The notes below the pieces were generated by a model. That model saw only the letters and a program-made list of their open reading frames with translations, had not been told where the DNA came from and made no database searches. Positions 1 to 12,065 of a stretch of DNA of 64,000 nt are shown piece after piece (positions within the stretch are counted from its first letter, which is position 1; each line of letters opens with the position of its first letter). This stretch comes from Vitrella brassicaformis CCMP3155 (taxonomy: Eukaryota; Protista; Chromerida), in the NCBI GenBank assembly GCA_001179505.1, contig CDMY01000656.1:1-64000 (forward strand), given 5' to 3'. A program made the translations under genes and the position numbers.

Positions 1-976
1 GGATGGATTCGCTCTCGCTTGTCTATCGCCCTCGCGCGTGCGACTAGCTTCTGTCTGCGTGGGGGAGGGAGGGGAGGGTTTGCGGGACTGGGGTGTGCTG
101 ATGGGGCGGGGATTGATTCCTCCTCCCCTTGAGCCTGTTTGAGTCTGCGTGCTGATGGGACTGTATTTGTATGAGTATCACGGACACACAGACGAGTGTT
201 ACGGTTAATGACACTTTCCCCCCCCAGAAGGAAAGAGAAATGTACTAAAGTGGGGAAGAAGGACTAGAGCTGTTGTGTGCATCCCCCGACCCACCTACCG
301 CCGGGGTTTCGAATATATGTGGAGGGGGTCACTGCGAGGAACAAGTTTGCCTCGAGCTTCAAATCCGTTCACGCGTTCGCGCGAAAAACGGCACCAAAAA
401 CCCACAAAATCGGTTCTTGGCTGTTTTCTCTCGGGATTCTGGTGCGTTCGCCGCGCAAGTCTGTGTGTGATTCGTCTGCTCTGTCCTCACGCAAGCGGCT
501 TTCGCTCTGCGCTTCGTCAAACACGAGAAGCAGCCACCGAAAGTTGACGCTGCCGTCAACCCAAATCACCACAATTGTGTCAATGCATGATACATTTCGC
601 TGTGCTGTGTTCACACGGAAGCGCGCATCGCTTTTCGTTTGATCAGAAAGAAGAACGGATCACTGAAAGGTTACACAGCCATTAACCATCAGTCACACAA
701 TGCATCGTTCATGGCACAACTTCGTTTGACTTTCACAGAAGCATGGGCGACCAGAACATCTGATCTCGAGTCAGCGATGTACATACGCACACGGCAACAC
801 CACGGCAAGACAAGCCAACCACACGAGGTCACTCCATACGCATCGGGCACCAGCGGCTTGAAACACCACCAAACACACCACAGCCAACCCCACACCACAC
901 CACCGAACACACCACAGCCGACCCCACAGCATACCACTCAACACCCACATCACATCCACACACCAAAACATGCCCC

Positions 977-3900
977 TCATGGCCGGTCCTGGCAGACGAA
1001 AGTGCGGGTTTGTGCCCTGTAGGGCCCTCGACAAATGAGGTCCTCAGGAAACAGACCCGCCCGCTGCTGCGCCCGAGCATCTGCCGCACGATGCGCCCGA
1101 CAGGACACTTGAAAAGCATTCCATCGCATCAGCGCCACCGACAGACACTGCCCCCAATGATTCATGACGCCCTCATGAAAAAATGCCCGATCTTCTGCAG
1201 AGCTGGCGGGTGGTGCCACGCGGCGTCGCGCCAGGCGGCGAAGCAGGGTGAGGGTCCCCTCACCCCAACGGCCGAACGTCTCCGCCGCAAGGGGGATGAA
1301 CGTGTAGCCCTGCTGCCGACAGTTGGCCCCATATTTACGGTCCTTCTCCCTCTCTCCCGACGCCGCCGCGGCACCTCCTGGCATACGGCTGTTGGTGCGG
1401 TTGACGGAGCGGTGGTGGGTGGTGGAGTTGTCGGGGCGGCATGGATGGCGCACGGTGACGTCGGCGAGAATGCCCTCGCCGTCCACCGTCAGAAAGAGAT
1501 CCATGCGCTGGCTGTTGGGGTCGGAGTCGGGTGGGGTGATGCCGAGGGAGCGAAGGGGGACCTCTGTGACGGCCGGAATGCCGACCTCCGCCAGGATGGA
1601 CTTGAAGACGTCCAGCAGAGTGTTGTGCTTGAAAAAACGCTCGGTCGTCGTCTGGTGGCAGAGGAAGAAGTGGTCACCCAGTGCGTCGACAGCCGCCCGG
1701 CACGTGCATGTGGACGACAGGTTGGCGAGGGGGAAGGGGAGGCCGAGGGTGACGGCAGTGGCCATGCGGTAGTGGAAGTTGTTCAAGCACTTGCGCTTGT
1801 CACCTCGGGTGTATCCGGGGATAGCCGATAGCCAGCCGGACGATAGAGGCCCCAGACAGGAAAGAAGGCGGCATCGATCGCGGCTGTCAGCGGGGAAGCT
1901 CTCAAAGAGGGTGTCAAAGTCCTTCTTCGCGAGGGCTTCGGAAATCTTCTGCTGCAGTCGGGTCTGCGGGCGTGCGACGAGCTGCTGGAGAGGGGGGATG
2001 GCGACACAGGGGAGGGATGTGGAGAAACCGATGCGGGCGGATGCTGCCGAGACGAGCCATTCCAGCTGGAAAAGAGAGGCTTCTGACTCGGGCATCCAGG
2101 ATTGCCCACGAAATCGATCCCACACATCCCCCACCGTGGCAGCCACAGACCCCAAATAGGCAGCCGGTGCCACGCGGGCAGAAGACACCAGCCCAAAGCC
2201 CCCCAACCGGATGGGAAGCTGCACTTGCCGGCGAGCTGACAGAGAGAGGGCGCCCGTCCGCTGAATGTGGGCAAAGGCCGCGACCTTAGCAGCGTCATGT
2301 GCACGGGCAGCCGCCAGGACTGACGGGGAGGGGGCGAGAAGGCGGCACCAATAGAGAAAGCGAGGCGACCCACAATACCGAAGGAGCAGGTTGGCCCCCT
2401 GCACCGCATAGTCCCCATCGTTGACAGCGAAGGCCACAACGGCGTCGAGGAGACGCTGATGGCTGGCGACGACCTCATTCACGGTGCGCTCCACAAAGGC
2501 CGGGGTGCCGATTGGGGCGGACAGCAAAATGATCCCTTCCGTCGATGCACGTACACCCCGACGCGTAATGGCCGTCGGCACGTCAGCAGCCGAGCGCCAA
2601 TGGGGAGACCACGCATGGCACTTGTCCAGCCGCAGCACCAGGTTGATAGCGCGGAAGGCTTCCTCGGCGGCCGTCAGAAAGGAGGGGACGGAGCTCTCAT
2701 CCATCCCCCCAAGCCCGTCATCCATAAACCCCCCCACTAGCGCGTCGGGGAAGCCCTCTTGCAGGCGACGGAGGGCTGGCTGAAAGGCGAGGCAGAACAG
2801 GAAGGGGCCCGCCACGTCACCCTGCTGCACGCCCTGACGACTGTGAACGGTCTCGACACGCCCGCCCTCCATCGTATACCACAAAGGCGCGGCCGTCCCA
2901 TAAAATTGCCAGAAAAATGCCACCATCGCCGGATGCTTGGCAGCGAGCTCGTCCACGATGCGCTGGCGGCTGATCTCGTTGAACGCATTGCGGCAGTCGA
3001 GCGAGAGGAGGGTGCGAGTGAGGGGCGGCCCATCGGCGTCCGGGCTGGCGGCGTCCTGCGTTTGGATGTAGGTCTGGGCCGTGCGAAAGAGCTTCTCCCC
3101 TCCGGCTGATGTGCCGACGGCAAACTGGTGGGGCCGGAACTCCTCCTCAAACTCCAGCTTATGTTGCAGGCATAGCGCGCGGGTCACCCATCGACGAAGC
3201 GCGTCGCCGATGGCGATCGGACGTACACCACCTCCCGGCTTCTCCAGGGCGAAGAGTCGAGCCGCTGCTAAGAGTTTGGTCACAACGGGGGGGAGGTCGC
3301 CGTCCAGCATCCGCTGCACGAACTTGAGGACGGGCACGGCGTCTGCGTTGGTGTGGGCCTCGCCGACAAGCACCTGAAGGTGCTCGTATCGCCAGCCGGT
3401 CGGTCCTGCGGCCGATCCACGTGGCGCGGTCTTCAGCGCAGCCAGGAGAAAGTCCCGGCTGGCCTCCAGGCGAGGGGCGTCGCCCGCCGGCGCCGCGGGC
3501 CGGACGACGGGGGCGGCATCGGGGTGGAGTGCCCGCAGCTGGTCGAGGCTCTGCTGAGTCGCTGCCGCGACAGGCGGCGATGTGAGACGGCTTGCCGCAC
3601 GAGAGAGCTCGCCGAGGCCAATAAGACGTGCTGCCGCTTCTCGCTTGACCGCATCAAAGGAAGGGGCTGCCTCGCCGTCGACAGGGCCCTCCCCAGCGGG
3701 CGCGTGGACGTGGCGGCCTTGCGGGGCAAACTGCCGTGCTTCGCTAAGTAGTCCCTCCCACTCGCCGCGCCAAAACCGGCCGAAACGGGCGCCCCACTTA
3801 CGTGCGCCGGCACCGTCGGCACCGCCACGGTTCATGGGGAAAAGCAGCAGGACGGGGATGTAGAGCAGCACCAGGCAGGCATTGTCGAAGTCGCCTGCCC

Positions 3901-6900
3901 GCGTGGACGACAGCAGCTGCTCCACAGCCTCTTTGACCTCTCGCAGGGCGAGCCGCGCACACTGCGGGAGCCGCTCGATGGTGCGGATGGCCCGCTGGAA
4001 GTCGGCGATGTGATCGGATTCTAACCGACCCGTCAGAAACTCCACTCCTGGGGCCGGCAAGGTCCGATGCGAGCGGTGCCAACGGCCGTCAGCAGAGCGC
4101 GTGGGGGGTGGAGGGGGAGGGGGACCGCCGCCATGCGGCCCACCAGGTGGGCCTCGGCCTCCTGCCGGCGGCTGACAACGGCGCCACTGCTGGGGCGGCC
4201 GACCGCTCCCTGTGAGCGGCCGACTCGTGCGTCGATCTCCTGCTTGTCGGCGACCGGCACCGCCCCCGCCATCAGCAGCATCGCCCGCCCCCCCAGGGCC
4301 ACCTTGCCCTGAACGCCGCGGGTCCTCTTCTTCGCGACGTCGGCGCTCCTCGGTCTCACCTTGTCGCCCCTCCTCAGTCCCACGTCGTCGCCCCTCCTCA
4401 GTTTCCCGTCGTCGCCCCTCCTCGTGTCCTCGCCTCTCCTCAGTCTCGCCTCGTCGCCCCTCCTCAGACCCACATCGTCGCCTCTCCTCAGTCTCTCGTC
4501 GTCGCCGCTCCTCGGTTTCACGCTGCCGCCGCGCCTCCTCGCCACAGCGTCCACGACAAAAATCGCCGCAGCTCAGACAAGGGCCGGTTCCTCTCGCCCG
4601 TCCGGAGCGACGCCTCGAAGCACCGCCCGCCGCGGTCCGTGGCGACTGCCGCAGCTCACGGTCTCGGCACCTCCTGGTGCCAGTGCGGCGCGGTTCGTCG
4701 GTACTGTTGGGGCCATGGCCACCTTCTCCGCCACCTGGCGGGTCCTCCTGGCGCTCCTCGGCCCCTTGTTGTCGTTGCGCCTCGGCCCCCTGTCGCCGCT
4801 GCGCCTCGGCCTCACGTCGTCGCCCCTCCTCGGCCTCCTGTCGTCGCTGCTCCTCGGCCTCACGTCGTCCTCTCTCGTCGGCCTCACGTCGTCGTCTCTC
4901 CTCGGCCTCACGTCGTCGTCTCTCCTCGGCCTCACGTCGTCCTCTCTCGTCGGCCTCACGTCGTCGTCCCTCCTCGGCCTCGCGTCGTCGCCCCTCCTCG
5001 GCCTCCTGTCGGCGCTGCTCCTCGGCCTCACGTCGTCCTCTCTCGTCGGCCTCACGTCGTCCTCTCTCGTCGGCCTCACGTCGTCGTCCCTCCTCGGCCT
5101 CGCGTCGTCGCCGCTCCTCGGCCTCCTGTCGGCGCTGCTCCTCGGCCTCACGTCGTCCTCTCTCTTCGGCCTCACGTCGTCGTCTCTCCTCGGCCTCACG
5201 TCGTCGTCTCTCCTCGGCCTCCTGTCGTCGCTGCTCCTCGACCTCACGGCGTCCTCTCTCGTCGGCCTCACGTCGGCGTCTGTTCTCGGCCTCTCGTCGT
5301 CGCCGCCGCCCCCTCGCCGAGGGGCCCGGCTCGGTGGTCCACGCGTTGAGGATATCCCTGGTGTCGTGCAGGCCGTTGGGAGGGGCCGTGTTGAAGGGGT
5401 CGAAGCCTTCGCGAGAGGCCATGTCAGCCAGGATCGCTGGCCGGCGTGGTGGGGCCCCTTCAGCAGCGATGAGCTCATCCAGAGACGGCTGAGGGCGAGC
5501 CGGGAGGGCACGTTGCGGCCGGGCTGGCGGGGATGCGCTCCTGCTGCTGCCCGAGGGGGAGACGACCGCCCAGTGAGCCCCCGAGTCGATCCGGCGGCGG
5601 CGGGAGCGACGGTGCTGGCCTTGCCGTGGGCGGCGGCGGCCTTGGCGCCGCTCGGGTCCTGCCTCCTCCCTGTCGATGCGCTCTGCCAGCGCCATGTCCG
5701 CCGCCAAAGCCGCCGACTCGTCTTGCAGCTCTTCGACGTCCATGGGGGCTCCCTCGCTGTGTGTGTCGGCCAGCCCGTTCTCGCCGTCGCGTGTGGGTGG
5801 CGGGGCGGGNNNNNNNNNNNNNNNNNNNNNNNNNNNNNNNNNNNNNNNNNNNNNNNNNNNNNNNNNNNNNNNNNNNNNNNNNNNNNNNNNNNNNNNNNNN
5901 NNNNNNNNNNNNNNNNNNNNNNNNNNNNNNNNNNNNNNNNNNNNNNNNNNNNNNNNNNNNNNNNNNNNNNNNNNNNNNNNNNNNNNNNNNNNNNNNNNNN
6001 NNNNNNNNNNNNNNNNNNNNNNNNNNNNNNNNNNNNNNNNNNNNNNNNNNNNNNNNNNNNNNNNNNNNNNNNNNNNNNNNNNNNNNNNNNNNNNNNNNNN
6101 NNNNNNNNNGTCGCGTATCACGATCGGCGCAGCGCGGCTTCCAACCGCCCCGACTCCCGGATCGCCGACATCGTCGGCCTCCACCCAGTCGTCGTGCGGT
6201 CGGTCAGGAGGCAGCATGGAGACGAAGTGGCCGGGCATGTAGAGCACATGGATGACGGGGCTGCCGTCGACACGTTGCTGTGGGTGGACGAGCAGCGTGA
6301 TTGCCACGGGGATGGGGGCCGCGGTCTCCAGAGACGCACGCTCGTGTGGCTGGCAGATCACGATGTTCGCCCCCACCACATTGGCTGCAGACTGCACCTC
6401 CATCTCACTAAGGCCTCTCCCCCGTCGGATCTCCTCGATGTAGGCGTCCGTGCCGATGCCCTGGGGCTGGAGAGCGGCGAATTCCCCCGCCCCGCTGCGC
6501 CGCTGAAGGTCGCCTACGAGTTGCCGGCGAAGTGCGGCCGGGGACGGCAGCTCTCCGCCGAGGCGGTCCGCGGGAGGCAGACCGTCTGTTGCGCGGCGAC
6601 GACGATGAGCTTGCAGCTGGCGGAGGATAGCTCGAAGCAGGCAGTTGTTCCCGTAGGCGCTCTCGTCGATGACACGGAAGAGAGGGCGCACCGCTGCTCC
6701 ACGAATCACCAGGGCGGCGCCATAGGCGATGAACTGGCGAAGCGAGGGGAGGATGCAGGGGAAGGACGCACCGGCCAGGCTCCCAAGCCGCTGCAGGTCC
6801 GCCAGGTCGAAGTCCTCTGGATTCGCCAGCCGTTGCCATTGCCCGACGTCGAGGCGCCACAGGCCTTGATGCACTCGCTGCATGGGGCGAGAGAACTCCG

Positions 6901-7549
6901 GCAGCGGCAGGAGCCCTTCGAGGTGGCCCGGAAGGGGATGGGCTTGTAGCGCCGCACGATGCCGCTGCAGGAGGTTCATCAGGATCTGGTGCCAGTGGAG
7001 GTGACCCGGCAGGTGGCTGTAGGGGCAGACGAGCGCGCCCGACCGGTCGCGGCGTGCCTGCCGCAGACACTCCCGGCAGATCCAGGAGTGGCACGCACAG
7101 GGGACCCGCTCGAAGGCGTCGGCCGGGTAAGCGTTGGAGCACCCGGGGCACTCGGGGTGGTCGGGGTTCGTCGGAGGGGGGGCGAGTGGATCGGCGGGGA
7201 TCTCGTCGAGGGAGTCCACGCCGAGAACGCACTCGGGGCAGAACGCCTGGCGGCACATCGGGCAGCGGGCGTGCTCGCAGCCGCGGCGCGCAGGGATCGC
7301 TTCCAAATGGCGGTGCCGAAAGGGTTGCAGCAGTCGCCGCCCGCCGAGCTGCACCACGCAGTAGCGGCAGATCTCGTGAATGGGTGGGTCCCGACGGCGC
7401 TGGCCGGGCACACGGCCGCCGGGGGGCGGCGCCGCATCGCCCCTGTGCACATTCACGAAATCCGGGAGGGGCCGCGCCTCGAAGCAGACGTCACATTGCC
7501 GAGTGTCCTCATCCTCACAGGAAGGTGACGGCGGTCGTTCGGCACTCAT
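977..7549 (-). CDS. Single-ORF polyprotein of a non-LTR retrotransposon: 2 RING-like Zn fingers, OTU-like Cys protease, E/R-rich helical repeat, reverse transcriptase, CCHC knuckle, restriction-like endonuclease
   Basis: Intronless 2190-aa ORF (spans one N gap). RT motifs RPIAIG, LDCRNAFN, QGVQQGDVAGPFLF, FMDD (2717-2728); CTC..GDHFFLCH knuckle (~1660-1720); RMDL..DVTV..EREKDRKY endonuclease motifs (~1340-1510); YGNNCLLRAI and YMPGHF protease motifs (6641-6660, 6221-6240). Confidence 0.93.
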   Translation of the reverse strand: MSAERPPSPSCEDEDTRQCDVCFEARPLPDFVNVHRGDAAPPPGGRVPGQRRRDPPIHEICRYCVVQLGGRRLLQPFRHRHLEAIPARRGCEHARCPMCRQAFCPECVLGVDSLDEIPADPLAPPPTNPDHPECPGCSNAYPADAFERVPCACHSWICRECLRQARRDRSGALVCPYSHLPGHLHWHQILMNLLQRHRAALQAHPLPGHLEGLLPLPEFSRPMQRVHQGLWRLDVGQWQRLANPEDFDLADLQRLGSLAGASFPCILPSLRQFIAYGAALVIRGAAVRPLFRVIDESAYGNNCLLRAILRQLQAHRRRRATDGLPPADRLGGELPSPAALRRQLVGDLQRRSGAGEFAALQPQGIGTDAYIEEIRRGRGLSEMEVQSAANVVGANIVICQPHERASLETAAPIPVAITLLVHPQQRVDGSPVIHVLYMPGHFVSMLPPDRPHDDWVEADDVGDPGVGAVGSRAAPIVIRDXXXXXXXXXXXXXXXXXXXXXXXXXXXXXXXXXXXXXXXXXXXXXXXXXXXXXXXXXXXXXXXXXXXXXXXXXXXXXXXXXXXXXXXXXXXXXXXXXXXXPAPPPTRDGENGLADTHSEGAPMDVEELQDESAALAADMALAERIDREEAGPERRQGRRRPRQGQHRRSRRRRIDSGAHWAVVSPSGSSRSASPPARPQRALPARPQPSLDELIAAEGAPPRRPAILADMASREGFDPFNTAPPNGLHDTRDILNAWTTEPGPSARGRRRRREAENRRRREADERGRREVEEQRRQEAEERRRREAEERRRREAEERGRREAEEQRRQEAEERRRREAEEGRRREADERGRREADERGRREAEEQRRQEAEEGRRREAEEGRRREADERGRREAEERRRREAEERRRREADERGRREAEEQRRQEAEEGRRREAEAQRRQGAEAQRQQGAEERQEDPPGGGEGGHGPNSTDEPRRTGTRRCRDRELRQSPRTAAGGASRRRSGRARGTGPCLSCGDFCRGRCGEEARRQRETEERRRRETEERRRCGSEEGRRGETEERRGHEEGRRRETEEGRRRGTEEGRQGETEERRRREEEDPRRSGQGGPGGAGDAADGGGGAGRRQAGDRRTSRPLTGSGRPPQQWRRCQPPAGGRGPPGGPHGGGPPPPPPPTRSADGRWHRSHRTLPAPGVEFLTGRLESDHIADFQRAIRTIERLPQCARLALREVKEAVEQLLSSTRAGDFDNACLVLLYIPVLLLFPMNRGGADGAGARKWGARFGRFWRGEWEGLLSEARQFAPQGRHVHAPAGEGPVDGEAAPSFDAVKREAAARLIGLGELSRAASRLTSPPVAAATQQSLDQLRALHPDAAPVVRPAAPAGDAPRLEASRDFLLAALKTAPRGSAAGPTGWRYEHLQVLVGEAHTNADAVPVLKFVQRMLDGDLPPVVTKLLAAARLFALEKPGGGVRPIAIGDALRRWVTRALCLQHKLEFEEEFRPHQFAVGTSAGGEKLFRTAQTYIQTQDAASPDADGPPLTRTLLSLDCRNAFNEISRQRIVDELAAKHPAMVAFFWQFYGTAAPLWYTMEGGRVETVHSRQGVQQGDVAGPFLFCLAFQPALRRLQEGFPDALVGGFMDDGLGGMDESSVPSFLTAAEEAFRAINLVLRLDKCHAWSPHWRSAADVPTAITRRGVRASTEGIILLSAPIGTPAFVERTVNEVVASHQRLLDAVVAFAVNDGDYAVQGANLLLRYCGSPRFLYWCRLLAPSPSVLAAARAHDAAKVAAFAHIQRTGALSLSARRQVQLPIRLGGFGLVSSARVAPAAYLGSVAATVGDVWDRFRGQSWMPESEASLFQLEWLVSAASARIGFSTSLPCVAIPPLQQLVARPQTRLQQKISEALAKKDFDTLFESFPADSRDRCRLLSCLGPLSSGWLSAIPGYTRGDKRKCLNNFHYRMATAVTLGLPFPLANLSSTCTCRAAVDALGDHFFLCHQTTTERFFKHNTLLDVFKSILAEVGIPAVTEVPLRSLGITPPDSDPNSQRMDLFLTVDGEGILADVTVRHPCRPDNSTTHHRSVNRTNSRMPGGAAAASGEREKDRKYGANCRQQGYTFIPLAAETFGRWGEGTLTLLRRLARRRVAPPASSAEDRAFFHEGVMNHWGQCLSVALMRWNAFQVSCRAHRAADARAQQRAGLFPEDLICRGPYRAQTRTFVCQDRP
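4790..5310. repeat. Coding minisatellite, 24-bp unit, encoding (RRREAEE/QR-like) octapeptides in the retrotransposon ORF
   Basis: About 20 variants of ctcctcggcctcacgtcgtcgtct; a more diverged second tract (RRRETEE) at ~4330-4530. Confidence 0.9.
5810..6109. other. Assembly gap inside the retrotransposon ORF
   Basis: Run of 300 N. Confidence 0.99.
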
Positions 7550-8068
7550 GCCTCAGGCCAGCGGCGATGGCGTACATGCCCGAGCGGAAGCGAGGGCATG
7601 CCCGAGTGAAGCGAAGGCGTCGTCACCTGAGTGAAGGCGTCCGAGGTTCAAATCGCCCCTCCAAGTGTTATCCCAAGGCGCCGGCTCAGTAGCAGGATCT
7701 GGGAGGATGCCCGTAGCGAGGGGGGGTCGTGGAGGTCGTTGGAGGGTACAGCCTCTGCAACTATAGCGGCCCGATGGCGTCTGACTTTGCCCAGATCCGC
7801 GTAGCACCCCGTGCGTGGCTTTTAGATGTTCTGTGGAGAAGTCCCCCAGCAGCTTGAGGCTATCGATGAACGAGCTGTGGCTACCCGTCAGCTGGCCGAA
7901 GACGCTCCAGTTGTTGCGCAGAGGCAGGTCGCATGCCATCATTGACCAACTGAAGGCGAAATTCGTTGGAAAAGAGCGATCGTCAAATGTCGCATGCGTT
8001 TACAAATTTGAGGCGACCCATTCACTTGACTCCAAGCATCCTAGGTCCCTGTCTGCGACACTGCAGAT

Positions 8069-9972
8069 ATGGGGGCTCTGATATTTCTGTGTTTTGCAGT
8101 GTCGCTTCTCTCAGGTGAGGACAAGAGAGGAGACGAAAGAGACGCCCAATGGCATTGCTCTCCGCTGTGTGGTGCAGCCGTCTCATCCCGTGATGCTTTC
8201 TGCGAACACCCCAAATTCTCTCTGCCTGTGAAGGGAGCCGGCACAGTCCACATCCACCTGTCGGCGGTTGTCAATCTTGCCATTGGGGCTGGGCTCAAAA
8301 TCGTCGATCACCTGAAGGATGCGCCCTTCTCGGGAGAACTGCAAGTGGAAAGCAAAGACGCTCCGCAAGGTAAGCGATTCCATGCAAACAGTCTTTGAAA
8401 CACTCGAATGTCTCTGTCTGTCTGTCTGTCTGTGGGTGCATGATTCCAGATTTGGTGACGTCAGCTGATCGGTTGAGTGACGAGTACATCCGAGGAGGGA
8501 AGTGGACCGAGACGGGCAAGACGATCATCAACGACAAGGGCAAGCCGGAGAAGGAGATGGTCTTCAAGAAGACAGAAGGCCTGACGGCTCTCCGCCAATG
8601 GAAAGGCATCGACGCCCTGAGCGAAGAGGAGAGCAGCGAAGGGTTTCCTGAGACATACTGGCTGGTGGACCCCTTAGACGGAACCAGCAACTTCGCGGGC
8701 GACGCCAAGAAGTGGATGGGGCAGGTCAGATCTTTCTCTTCTTCCCCTGACAAAGGCAAGCTCTACCAGGAGATGAAGAAAGTCCTTGCAGCCGAGTGGA
8801 CGGTCATGGTGGCCCTCGTCCACAAGAACAAGGCAGTGGCGGGGGTAGTCACGGTGCCATGGAAACGAGTCGCCTACTATGGCGTGGTCAAAGGTGGCGA
8901 TGTGGCCATCGACAGTCCTGATGGGAGGTTTGCCTGCCGCCTCGTGTACGGAGAAGGCCCATGGAGCGAGGGAACTGCGCGCAGGATGCATGAGAAAGCG
9001 GCGTCCAATACACCGCTGACGGCATACGGCGGCGGGTGCATTCAGGGTCTGGAAGCACCCCACATCAGGCCTGGCAGTCTGGTGCAGAAGATAGGGAGCG
9101 ACAAGAACCACAACGACGCCTACGACGCCTACGACTACTTCCTCTCACGCCATCCCAGCGGCCCGATGTTCAATTTCAGGGAGGTGGAGATCACCAAGCC
9201 CGGGGCAAAAGTGACGACAACGAATGTTCAAGAGTTTGGCTCATCACTGGTACCGTAGCGAGGCGGGTCTCGCTGGCAACGATCACAGAAAGCGAGCGTG
9301 TCTCCCCCTCCGACCGACGTGTGCAATTGCAGAAATTTTTGATGGTAATAGACCCTGAGTTGCTATGGTTCTACGACGGAGGCAGTGTCTCACGTCAGCC
9401 GGAACCTCGCTGTGGAGAGACAATGATCTGGTCGGCCAACCCGAAACTCTACGATGTGGTACGGACGGGCAAGACACATGCGCACTTACAACAGTCGACA
9501 TCGCATGGGCCCTGCATGCAGATCTATCCTCGGATCGCACCTTTGAAGGCATGGGACACTGCCGCGGCACACGCCATCCTCAATGCGGGAGGCGCCATGA
9601 TTTTGCGAGTCGACTGCGACAACGAGGGCAACCGGGAGTACGGCAAGGAGACGGGGCCCTTCAGCTTCACAGTGAGTGGGGAGGAGGTGGGCTACTCGCG
9701 GACAGAGGGGCCCGACCAGTGTGTCGCCAACACAAGGTGGGTGGGTCGGTGGAGATGGGATAGACAAAGACATCGGCGGGATGGCATGTGCATGTGCATA
9801 CGGCATGTGTCTCTTCAGGCACCATCAAGATGTCCCTACCCTCAAGACCAAGAAGGAGTTTCAGGACTACTTCATCGCCATGGGGCCACTTGATGTCGCT
9901 GGAAGCGGCAAATCCCTCACAGAAATGCTGTCCGGCCATTGCCTCAAAGACCCGAAAACACAACAGAAGTGA
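8069..9972 (+). CDS. cysQ-like: CysQ/inositol-monophosphatase family phosphatase (PAP phosphatase-like) with predicted signal peptide; spliced, 3' end uncertain (may extend to ~10240)
   Basis: LVTSAD, LSEE, YWLVDPLDGT, WTVMVALV; GSSL|KFLMV and YDV|IYPRIAPLKAWDTAAAHAIL are joined by GT-AG introns. N-terminus MGALIFLCFAVSLLSG. Confidence 0.85.
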
Positions 9973-10674
9973 ACAAGCTAACCAATCAAGCGAGACATAC
10001 ATATACCTGTCAATGTTGCCATGTGTCTCTGCAGGACGCCCATGACTTGCCTACAGCGGAAAAACACATGCGCTGAAGAGGACATGAGCCACCTGAACAT
10101 GAGCCACCTGTCTCAGTGCGCATCAGAGGCCTACGGGAGGACACCAGATGAAGGACACAAGAAGACCGCTGTCCGCGGCAACCCGAAGGCACACAGTGCG
10201 TCATCAGCTCTGGAGGTAAGCAGACCAGCACGGCAATGAAAGCATGTATGCGCAGCCATATGACGGACCGTGCCATGTTATGCGTGTGCAGATGCCCGTC
10301 GCCACTGCAGCTGCGGTGTGAGTGTCATTTCATTGACCGCGTGCAAGACAATTAAGTGACACGTCGAGAATGGACTAATGAGAGAGGGTGCGGCGCTCTG
10401 AACACGAAAGGACGTTGGTTGAATTGCTGAAGAGGTGCTTCCGTCCGTCCGTCCATCTGTCTGTCTGTCTGCATGTCTCCTTATGCATCGATTGGCATCG
10501 CTCGCTCAGGCATCCATCCATCCATCCATTTATTCTTCAGACAAAGGAAGGAACGAAAACCGCTCGCATCCATCCCTCACTCCCTCTCTCACTCACTCAT
10601 TCACTCTCAGCATGGATCAACACCAACACCAGCAGCCACACATTCGTCCCTTCTTCCATCCATCCATCCATCCA

Positions 10675-11507
10675 TCACTCGTCGAATTTCGCTTCGATGT
10701 GGTGCATGCCAATGGATCCGCCATAGAGGCTGGGTCGGGTCTTGCGCACCTTGGGTGCGGCGGCTGCCTCGGCTGCCTTGGCCTGAGCCTGGGAACGGGC
10801 CAGGATGGTCATGAAAATGGGGAATGCGAACGCAATGATGCCCGCAACCTGCAAGGCATGCGACAGACTCGGACAGAGACATTCCCTTTGTATGTGTCTC
10901 TTGTCTGTCTGTGTGTGAATGGTGACTTACGAGTATGCCCTCGTTTGGGAGAACGAAGTTGCCGTTGAGCTTCTTGGTGGTGTAGGCGGCCAGCGGGTTG
11001 CACCCCTGACTCACCTGCACTCATTGACCCCATTGATGAAGGGATTGGATATATGAAGACACCCAAGAGACACCCGTGTGGACTTACCGCTCCGGCGACG
11101 AGGGCCGCCGTTCCCATCAACGTGCCGATGCCAACAAAGCCGAACGTGCCTGCACTCGTGCAACAAAGCGAACACACAGTAAACCACCCCGTGTGTGTGT
11201 GTGTTGTGTTTAGTTTGGTGCCTGCGGCGATGCTCCATCCGGTGGAGAAGATCTGCGACTTGACCATGGGGAAGACGATGATGTTGGCGTAGGCGAAGAA
11301 GATGCTCTTGGTCCACGGCATCAGCAGACACAGCAACGAGTGAAGCACACCCTGTCGATGAAACCACACATCCATCCAAGCATGGTTTATTCACAGTCGT
11401 GCTGTGCTAGAGTGGTGTTTGTCGTGTGAGAGAGCGACTCACCGTCGCGTTGGCGAGGTAGATGCTGAAGATGTTGCCGTACCTGGTGGCCAGCCAACCC
11501 ACTGCGG

Positions 11508-11539
<32 letters not shown>

Positions 11540-12065
11540 TGGGAATGCATTCTATTGTGTGTGTGTGTGTACTAGGGAAGGTTGTGAGGCCGCAGAAGGG
11601 AAAGATGATGCCGAAGAATTTGCTGAGCTGCGCCGCCTTCTCGTCGCCATAGACGCCAAACTGGAGAGGGCCCGTGGGCATGAAGAACGACATCTGGACG
11701 ACAAAGACGAAAAGTGTATCGAGACGTCCATCCACAGGCACCCACGTACTCTGAACATTTCGATTGCGAAAAACGCGACGAACATGATGAAGGTGAGGCT
11801 GGTGTACTTCTGGAGCTGTGTCATGTCGCTGTGGTCCACAGCCAGAGGGGCCGGCCTCTCCACCAGCTTGACGCCAGCTGTATGCCAGCCACCACACCAC
11901 CACATTATATGGCGAAGCGCACACGCACACGCACAAACAGAGTAGATACCTTCCTGATCGGTGACGAGGCGCTGCGTCTCCGGTTCAATGTCCTCAGCTG
12001 CCGCACACCAGCCACACACCCACATGTGTGCCGAGGTACCTCGCTGCCTGCTCTCTCTCTCTCTC

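Follow-up and report, generated by a model that had tools for sequence, protein, structure and literature searches.

The stretch of DNA analysed here (the window) comprises 64,000 nucleotides (nt) from the coral-associated alga Vitrella brassicaformis CCMP3155 (contig CDMY01000656.1, positions 1 to 64,000). All coordinates are window positions; C656 denotes the contig of the window, and other C-numbers denote other contigs of the same genome. At 726-7717 on the minus strand, the window holds a retrotransposon without long terminal repeats (LTRs), i.e. a long interspersed nuclear element (LINE), of the type that carries a restriction-like endonuclease (RLE); the copy is nearly full-length and its coding sequence is intact. 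The single open reading frame (ORF) of this copy, at 977-7549 on the minus strand, comprises 2190 codons as assembled, 100 of which read X from a run of N, and encodes, from the N to the C terminus, RING-like finger 1, RING-like finger 2, an OTU-fold domain, a linker, a reverse transcriptase (RT), a CCHC zinc knuckle and the RLE. An earlier reading of the same DNA from its letters and ORFs (the sequence-only reading) had reported RING-like fingers and an OTU-like domain upstream of the RT within one ORF; this observation was confirmed as a whole, the ORF is present, and the codons named for it are correct.

The limits of the element were set by comparison of copies. Homology to paralogs stops at ~7717 and at ~726-730, and 7717 is also the point from which the contigs of other copies differ. 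Upstream of the ORF, on the minus strand, lies a remnant of the 5' untranslated region (UTR) at 7550-7717; in C871, C326 and C707, a shared 5' UTR reaches at least 220 nt further, a part that is absent from the window copy and, therefore, the window copy is slightly 5'-truncated while keeping the whole ORF. The 3' UTR (726-976, minus strand) has a conserved terminal part of ~45 nt (726-772) ending in ...GTGAAAG(TCAA), and there is no poly(A) at the 3' end of the element. The assignment to the RLE-type non-LTR retrotransposons rests on a single ORF in which the RT is followed by a CCHC knuckle and then by a PD-(D/E)xK endonuclease, on the absence of LTRs and on the many 5'-truncated copies. The genome holds at least 58 matches to the RT compared to ~21 matches to the head, i.e. 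the RING-RING-OTU part of the protein.

The V. brassicaformis genome comprises 72.7 Mb in 1064 scaffolds, including 632 kb of LINEs, and the supplement of the genome paper classes such elements simply as "LINE" (PMC4501334). In the reference annotation, the copies that we detected are unnamed or uncharacterised proteins, and one is tagged as a C2H2-type domain protein.

The ORF as assembled contains a gap of 300 N (5810-6109) between the OTU domain and the remainder of the protein. This gap raises the question of whether the head is a host gene scaffolded onto a retrotransposon, or a functionless passenger fragment; the copies on C871 (L020) and C749 (L021) are likewise interrupted by runs of N and display apparent duplications of the OTU-linker segment, so that this repeat family cannot be regarded as reliably assembled. 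However, the flanks of the gap are 38-40 nt apart in four paralogous copies (C707, C749 twice, C871), which after subtraction of unaligned flank bases leaves 33 nt, and three of these four copies read through the gap site in a single frame. Moreover, a contig from the marine-sediment metagenome run X5 is 98-99% identical to the window on either side of the gap (9 and 3 differences from 5310-5809 and 6110-6574, respectively) and bridges 5809 to 6110 with exactly 33 letters, which are in frame, contain no stop and are extremely G-rich on the plus strand. Contigs from the organism's own runs stop exactly at 5809 and resume at 6225; because the 33-nt bridge is so G-rich on the plus strand, we attribute the gap to a sequencing drop-out. 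Thus, the 300 N are a placeholder for ~11 Pro-rich codons with a true content of 33 nt, and a single ORF of ~2101 codons encodes both the head and the RT, in an element of ~6.72 kb (~6.99 kb as assembled). Two independent and uninterrupted ORFs, L024 (2350+ amino acids (aa), from a metagenome) and L056 (2236 aa, from another assembly), have the same domain order.

The head (480 aa) was compared to 1.8 billion representative proteins in an exhaustive phmmer search. Six proteins matched, four of them Vitrella gene models on copies of the element and two of them metagenome proteins (one full-length head-to-RT ORF and one short head-only contig), i.e. all six belong to the element or its relatives. 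The order head-linker-RT-RLE was found in six lineages that are 30-50% identical: lineage A with the window copy, C707 and C871; lineage B with C278; lineage C with the metagenome ORF L024, which has no close copy in the Vitrella genome; lineage D with C381, C785, C54 and C671; lineage E with L056; and lineage F with L058 (129-8351; GCA_029979685.1), in which the head and RT-RLE lie in the same frame with one in-frame stop between them. In L058, the gene caller missed the RING-RING-OTU head and placed minus-strand genes there.

Nei-Gojobori dN/dS values between copies were 0.29-0.33 for the fingers, 0.31-0.42 for the OTU domain, 0.39-0.51 for the linker, 0.24 for the RLE and 0.10-0.14 for the RT. 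The value of ~0.3 in the head shows that the head has been under purifying selection in propagating lineages. Judged from the alignment of the six lineages, the Cys/His pattern of the fingers and the conservation of Asn302-Cys303 and His441 in the OTU domain are beyond chance. In total, the bridge in four paralogs and an independent contig, the uninterrupted ORFs, the confinement of the head to the element and its selection refute an origin by scaffolding or as a passenger on the present data and leave such an origin highly improbable. The N-terminal part is not a separate gene joined across the run of N, as the sequence-only reading had allowed for, and we consider it virtually certain that the head-RT-RLE architecture is real.

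Near-identical heads were also present in the marine-sediment and microbial-mat metagenome runs X5, X7-X9 and X11-X14, with up to 0.68 of the sampled words recovered, which suggests that Vitrella-like organisms live in such habitats.

The OTU-fold cysteine protease domain (aa 263-450; 6200-6763, minus strand) was delimited by predicted structure, motif and conservation. The sequence-only reading had described an OTU-like domain that retains its Cys and His and in which GNNC replaces the usual DGNC; the codons of Cys303 (6641-6643) and His441 (6227-6229) were verified, and Asn302, Cys303 and His441 are invariant across the six lineages. The motif of the window copy is GNNC303LLRA compared to DGNCLFRA in a cellular OTU protein of Vitrella, and with hhalign AYGNNCLLRAILRQLQ was aligned onto KPDGNCLFRAFADQIT of the cellular Vitrella OTU with an E value of 0.014. 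An AlphaFold2 model was built from an alignment of six sequences and had a predicted local distance difference test (pLDDT) score of 70-90 over aa 270-450. When this model was used in Foldseek, all top 50 matches were OTU domains, among them OTUD3 with an E value of 2e-5 and a TMt of 0.72. Using VIA-align, the best match was yeast Otu2 (Z 14.2, 148 residues aligned, root mean square deviation 3.1), followed by OTUD5/DUBA and OTUD3 (both Z 13.8) and OTUD1 (Z 13.5); in these matches, 138-150 residues were aligned, covering nearly the whole target domains. Similarly, shape and feature (language-model) searches of the ESM-Atlas led to OTU/otubain clusters. In the predicted model, Cys303 opens a helix (303-321) and His441 opens a strand (441-446), which is the topology of OTU and papain proteases, and the distance from His441 to the end of the aligned range agrees with that in OTUD5 and OTUD1, if the residue numbers that we take for these proteins are right. 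Altogether, the predicted structure indicates that the domain is a highly divergent member of the OTU fold.

A predicted complex of the OTU domain with residues 10-76 only of Vitrella ubiquitin scored 0.16, the mark being 0.34, a result that tips the balance in neither direction. Residues 10-76 were chosen because every ubiquitin unit in the Vitrella genome has an intron after ~codon 9.

Finger 1 (aa 13-111; 7217-7513, minus strand) was delimited by VIA, Foldseek and invariance, and finger 2 (aa 124-191; 6977-7180, minus strand) by phmmer, VIA and invariance. The two RING-like fingers that the sequence-only reading had placed in the RT ORF stand, in that their codons (e.g. Cys19 at 7493-7495 and Cys107 at 7229-7231 in finger 1, and Cys134 at 7148-7150 in finger 2) are right and their ligands are invariant in six lineages; however, the ligand sets had to be amended. 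In finger 1, the invariant residues are C19, C22, H35, C61, C64, C96, P97, C99, R100, C104 and C107. Ten Cys/His of this finger were counted as invariant, among them an extra CPEC pair (Cys104 and Cys107) that had been missed, and the finger contains two disordered insertions. Candidates for the cross-brace are C19, C22, H35, (H58), C61, C64, C96 and C99, with ligands 3 and 4 assigned tentatively. In finger 2, C134, C137, C151, C153, C158, C161, C175, P176, W186 and H187 are invariant, giving a spacing of C-x2-C-x13-C-x-C-x4-C-x2-C-x13-C-x11-H in which all eight ligands are invariant. The last of these is His187 in the invariant WH and not, as had been assumed, the His of CPYSH, which is not conserved. 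Upstream extension of the L024, L025 and L056 ORFs beyond their called starts showed that all of them contain the first CxxC as well as His35.

We compared these fingers to known structures and sequences. The finger model (aa 1-200) has a mean pLDDT of 65, with a range of 60-85 and disordered insertions. VIA matched finger 2 (range 124-191) to the RING domains of HHARI and RNF144A at Z 4.2-4.4, and phmmer against PDB sequences matched it to the NOT4 RING with an E value of 0.005, the first six ligands being equally spaced. Similarly, the Foldseek matches of the fingers are RINGs, with E values of 0.17 or weaker. Moreover, finger 1 contains an aliphatic residue (V/L/I) within the first CxxC, a Pro after ligand 7 and an Arg after ligand 8, the latter two in an invariant CPxCR. 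In characterised RING-type ubiquitin ligases (E3), such positions are the contact to the ubiquitin-conjugating enzyme (E2) and the "linchpin". These observations and the model suggest that finger 1 has a RING fold and shows the features expected of a RING that binds an E2, and that finger 2 is a less canonical RING-fold finger.

Several observations weigh against the assignment of both parts of the head as enzymes. For the OTU domain, a third catalytic residue is not apparent at the usual positions, the residue at Cys-3 being G, G, G, D, D and D over the six lineages and that at His+2 being V, M or hydrophobic; PF02338 (OTU) of Pfam gave no match in six members even at an E value of 10; and the family profile gave no significant OTU among PDB sequences. 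For the fingers, the same profile gave no significant RING among PDB sequences; the gathering scores of Pfam RING and IBR families were not reached (21.3 bits compared to 27 for IBR_1 at aa 87-107, and 8.4 compared to 27 for zf-RING_4); and the top 50 of the VIA-wide search were nearly all RING or U-box at Z 4-5, which is not decisive alone. The number of conserved ligands in finger 1 exceeds what a RING requires, and a long insertion lies between its ligands 3 and 4; of the E2-contact and linchpin positions, finger 2 retains just the Pro that follows ligand 7, without a linchpin. Moreover, all models derive from shallow alignments of six sequences with a mean pLDDT of 63-65, and in RLE LINEs, zinc fingers at the N terminus usually serve to bind the target DNA. 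Thus, of the checks on the head that the sequence-only reading had proposed, the structure search came out in favour of the OTU, and the profile searches returned neither OTU nor RING at threshold.

These observations would fit a head that is non-enzymatic, i.e. the fingers bind nucleic acid or the target site as in R2-type elements, and the OTU fold is a pseudo-enzyme that binds ubiquitin or another protein; RLE LINEs as a rule use N-terminal zinc fingers for DNA binding (PMC4640811), and the missing third catalytic residue, the OTU scores under every threshold of the hidden Markov models and the low Z scores of the fingers all point in this direction. By contrast, Cys303 and His441 are strictly invariant over six lineages at 30-50% identity, which is unexpected for a pseudo-enzyme, finger 1 retains CPxCR and the aliphatic E2-contact position, and the structure searches gave RING/U-box and not C2H2 or Myb. 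We therefore consider a non-enzymatic head unlikely. We lean towards an OTU domain that is catalytically active; that finger 1 is a working E3 is possible but somewhat doubtful.

The linker from the OTU domain to the N-terminal region of the RT (4082-6199, minus strand) comprises ~700-850 aa, is poorly conserved and has a biased composition rich in Pro, Arg, Glu and Gly. At 4753-5303, it contains a coding tandem repeat of 24 nt in 23 copies, which encodes an octapeptide rich in Arg and Glu and is much expanded compared to C707 and C871. The RT follows with a conserved N-terminal extension from ~4081, a core that matches Pfam RVT_1 (2606-3244, minus strand; E 1.5e-12) and the active-site motif FMDD at 2717-2728; its best relatives by sequence among solved structures are R2 proteins (PDB 9nl3 and 9dou; E 4e-5). 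Ahead of the endonuclease, a CCHC zinc knuckle (CTC..x9..H..x3..C) was identified by motif at 1658-1708 (minus strand), and the RLE motifs (RMD...ADVTV...EKDRKY) lie at 1331-1510 (minus strand), where the segment aligned to that of the R2 RLE as a weak domain match.

The layout of one giant ORF with a long, weakly conserved linker between head and RT would be in agreement with an OTU domain that is mainly a polyprotein-processing endopeptidase, comparable to arterivirus PLP2 and the tymovirus protease, and that frees the RING-OTU head from RT-RLE in cis, deubiquitination being secondary. Viral OTU and papain-like proteases do both jobs, and the head and RT of L058 are split by one in-frame stop and hence can be separate products. 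Moreover, the linker contains a short motif at 5339-5452, SLDELIAAEG ... LADM(A/T)SREG(F/Y)DP, which lineages A, B and D share and lineage C retains in part, and which may be an interaction or processing site. However, no conserved cleavage site of the Gly-Gly, LRGG or LxGG type and no 2A-like peptide (NPGP) was found in the ORF or in L024; the ORF has just two RLGG motifs, one within the OTU domain and the other in the thumb of the RT, and the nearest structures of the OTU domain are cellular deubiquitinases (Otu2, OTUD5, OTUD3 and OTUD1) and not viral processing proteases. Taken together, a mainly processing role is quite unlikely, and somewhat more so than a non-enzymatic head.

The RLGG motif in the RT thumb (~2200-2215; aa 1775-1790) reads LPIRLGGFG in the window copy and LPLRLGGLG in L024 and resembles the C terminus of ubiquitin, LRLRGG. 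This is the sole conserved RLGG of the protein and is probably a common motif of LINE thumbs.

Altogether, the explanation that we favour as a whole, with moderate confidence, is an RLE LINE in which the RING-RING-OTU head would function as a cis-linked ubiquitin writer and eraser. In such an element, the OTU domain would be an active deubiquitinase-type thiol (iso)peptidase that accompanies the RT and removes ubiquitin, or a modifier of the ubiquitin-like type, either from the element's own protein or ribonucleoprotein (RNP) or from nearby host proteins. Deubiquitination would keep a polypeptide of such length and repeat content from being turned over in a ubiquitin-dependent manner, also where the ubiquitin was added by its own RING. 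Finger 1 would recruit host E2~Ub and mark host or element proteins during retrotransposition and, together with the OTU domain, would form the writer/eraser pair. That RING and OTU act as a coupled editing unit is rather doubtful. We also view with some scepticism the more specific proposal that the head is a self-contained ubiquitin-editing unit in which finger 1, by way of a host E2, would ubiquitinate host proteins or the element itself, and in which the OTU domain, with the ribosome-associated deubiquitinase Otu2 as its nearest structural match, would deubiquitinate the RNP or ribosomes stalled on the long, highly charged and repeat-rich ORF, allowing escape from the proteasome or from ribosome quality control. 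The interpretation of the sequence-only reading, that a CRE-like element carrying a ligase-like and a deubiquitinase-like module may process its own polyprotein and/or edit host ubiquitination, thus gains from the RING-like fingers, the OTU fold, the continuity of the ORF and the purifying selection; its CRE-like label is not confirmed and its claim to novelty is narrowed, as set out below.

Retrotransposons are commonly thought to carry just what copying and pasting needs. To our knowledge, accessory proteases of the ubiquitin/SUMO-hydrolase type (Ulp1, Josephin and OTU) recur on retrotransposons, and a function has been shown for none of them. The Vitrella family is a sharper case, in that its RT is joined to both a candidate ubiquitin ligase and a candidate deubiquitinase, two modules that have long been conserved under selection and whose small size suits expression and assay. 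If the head is active, this LINE would manipulate host ubiquitin signalling as many viruses do and, if so, would carry the first pair of E3 and deubiquitinase known on a LINE. The family is also a warning for annotation, since Pfam recognises neither its OTU nor its RING domains, and the copies have been left unnamed or uncharacterised.

The surroundings of the element contain further repeats and an ORF of a known family. A repeat of ~415 bp at 308-721, present in at least 25 genomic copies at 85-91% identity, has its natural end 4-5 nt from the 3' end of the retrotransposon; Rfam gave no match for this repeat, which also does not resemble the tail of the LINE and is possibly a non-autonomous retroposon. 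Positions 1-226 are 99% identical to stretches on C221, C254 and C243, an identity that marks them as another young repeat or a segmental duplication. On the other side, ~700 nt past the 5' end of the element, an ORF of the inositol monophosphatase family lies at 8395-9258 on the plus strand (Pfam E 2.8e-10), and a segment upstream of it that reaches ~100 nt into this ORF (~7833-8498) has a 75% identical counterpart on C312.

With respect to known elements, the label CRE-like given by the sequence-only reading is not confirmed, as the 3' flanks of eight copies are mutually unrelated and the N-terminal fingers are not C2H2; the nearest proteins in the databases are unnamed. The unrelated flanks speak against insertion at specific sites, which is typical of CRE, R2, NeSL and Utopia, and on these grounds site-specific insertion of the spliced-leader type (CRE1/2, SLACS and CZAR) was rejected. 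Similarly, an Rfam scan of 1-12000 returned no family, and thus there is no sign of an RNA gene as a target around the insertion. The element resembles the R2 protein in its C-terminal layout of CCHC and RLE and in a similar endonuclease motif, ...D...DVTVR...; unlike it, R2 has C2H2/Myb domains at the N terminus, inserts only into 28S rDNA and has neither a protease nor a RING.

NeSL and Utopia elements carry Ulp1 proteases (PMC4640811). Like these elements, the Vitrella element is a single-ORF RLE LINE with zinc fingers and a clan-CA cysteine protease of the Ubl-hydrolase type before the RT and with CCHC and RLE after it; by contrast, it has an OTU domain instead of Ulp1, RING-fold fingers instead of simple zinc-finger motifs, an insertion that is not target-specific, and a chromerid alga instead of nematodes as its host. 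A Ulp1 (C48) protease as in NeSL and Utopia was rejected, since the structure matches are OTU and not Ulp1. In Dualen/RandI, a Josephin-related cysteine protease has been described (PMC9977147), and a 2026 preprint reports Josephin in the ORF2p of Haematococcus (PMC13405545). These elements share with the Vitrella element the fusion of a protease of a deubiquitinase family to a LINE polyprotein with an RLE and differ from it in that Dualen has an apurinic/apyrimidinic endonuclease (APE) and RNase H, in that the protease is Josephin and not OTU, and in that RINGs are unreported there. A Dualen/RandI element with a hidden APE was rejected, as no Pfam APE or RNase H was found on the 1610-aa C-terminal piece, on P0003 or on P0059.

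The same preprint describes an ORF2p-like protein of Symbiodinium necroappetens with an OTU deubiquitinase domain at the N terminus (PMC13405545). Compared by description, this protein, from another myzozoan alveolate, also has the OTU N-terminal to a LINE RT; it differs by a context of 2A-like peptides, which the Vitrella ORF does not have, by a second RT fused at the C terminus and by no mention of RINGs. Among more distant relatives of the RT (~26% identity), P0018 and P0024 (L057:2001-8771), both from large contigs of eukaryotic origin, show an OTU match below the Pfam threshold C-terminal of the RT (aa ~1780-1860), and P0013 has a sub-threshold zf-RING_2 match N-terminal of the RT. Therefore, accessory domains of the ubiquitin type may recur in this group. 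OTU domains are also found on Ginger1 DNA transposons and Helentrons (PMC2836005, PMC4067079), which share with the Vitrella element a transposon-borne OTU with catalytic residues conserved across families; unlike it, they are DNA transposons with OTUs that are visible to PF02338 and that have no RING partner. The authors of these studies have argued that transposon-borne proteases of the deubiquitinase type take part in transposition (PMC2836005, PMC4067079, PMC13405545), and for the OTUs of Ginger1 and Helentrons ubiquitin pathways have been proposed as the route (PMC2836005, PMC4067079).

Among cellular proteins, Otu2, OTUD5/DUBA, OTUD3 and OTUD1 are the best structural matches at Z 13.5-14.2; however, sequence identity to them is 15-18%, and in contrast to cellular OTUs neither Cys-3 nor His+2 of the Vitrella domain offers a third residue of the acidic or amide type. 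The combination of an OTU domain and ubiquitin-ligase activity in one polypeptide has a cellular counterpart in A20, whose ligase activity, unlike that of a RING, stems from a zinc finger of a non-RING type. For LINEs, no description of RING fingers, or of RING and OTU together, was found in the open-access literature. Thus, the novelty that the sequence-only reading had claimed for tandem RING and OTU stands, within that literature, for this combination and is narrowed by the reports of Ulp1, Josephin and one case of OTU on LINEs (PMC4640811, PMC9977147, PMC13405545). In total, the theme of a LINE with an accessory protease of a ubiquitin family is already known, and the unusual part of the Vitrella element is its tandem RINGs.

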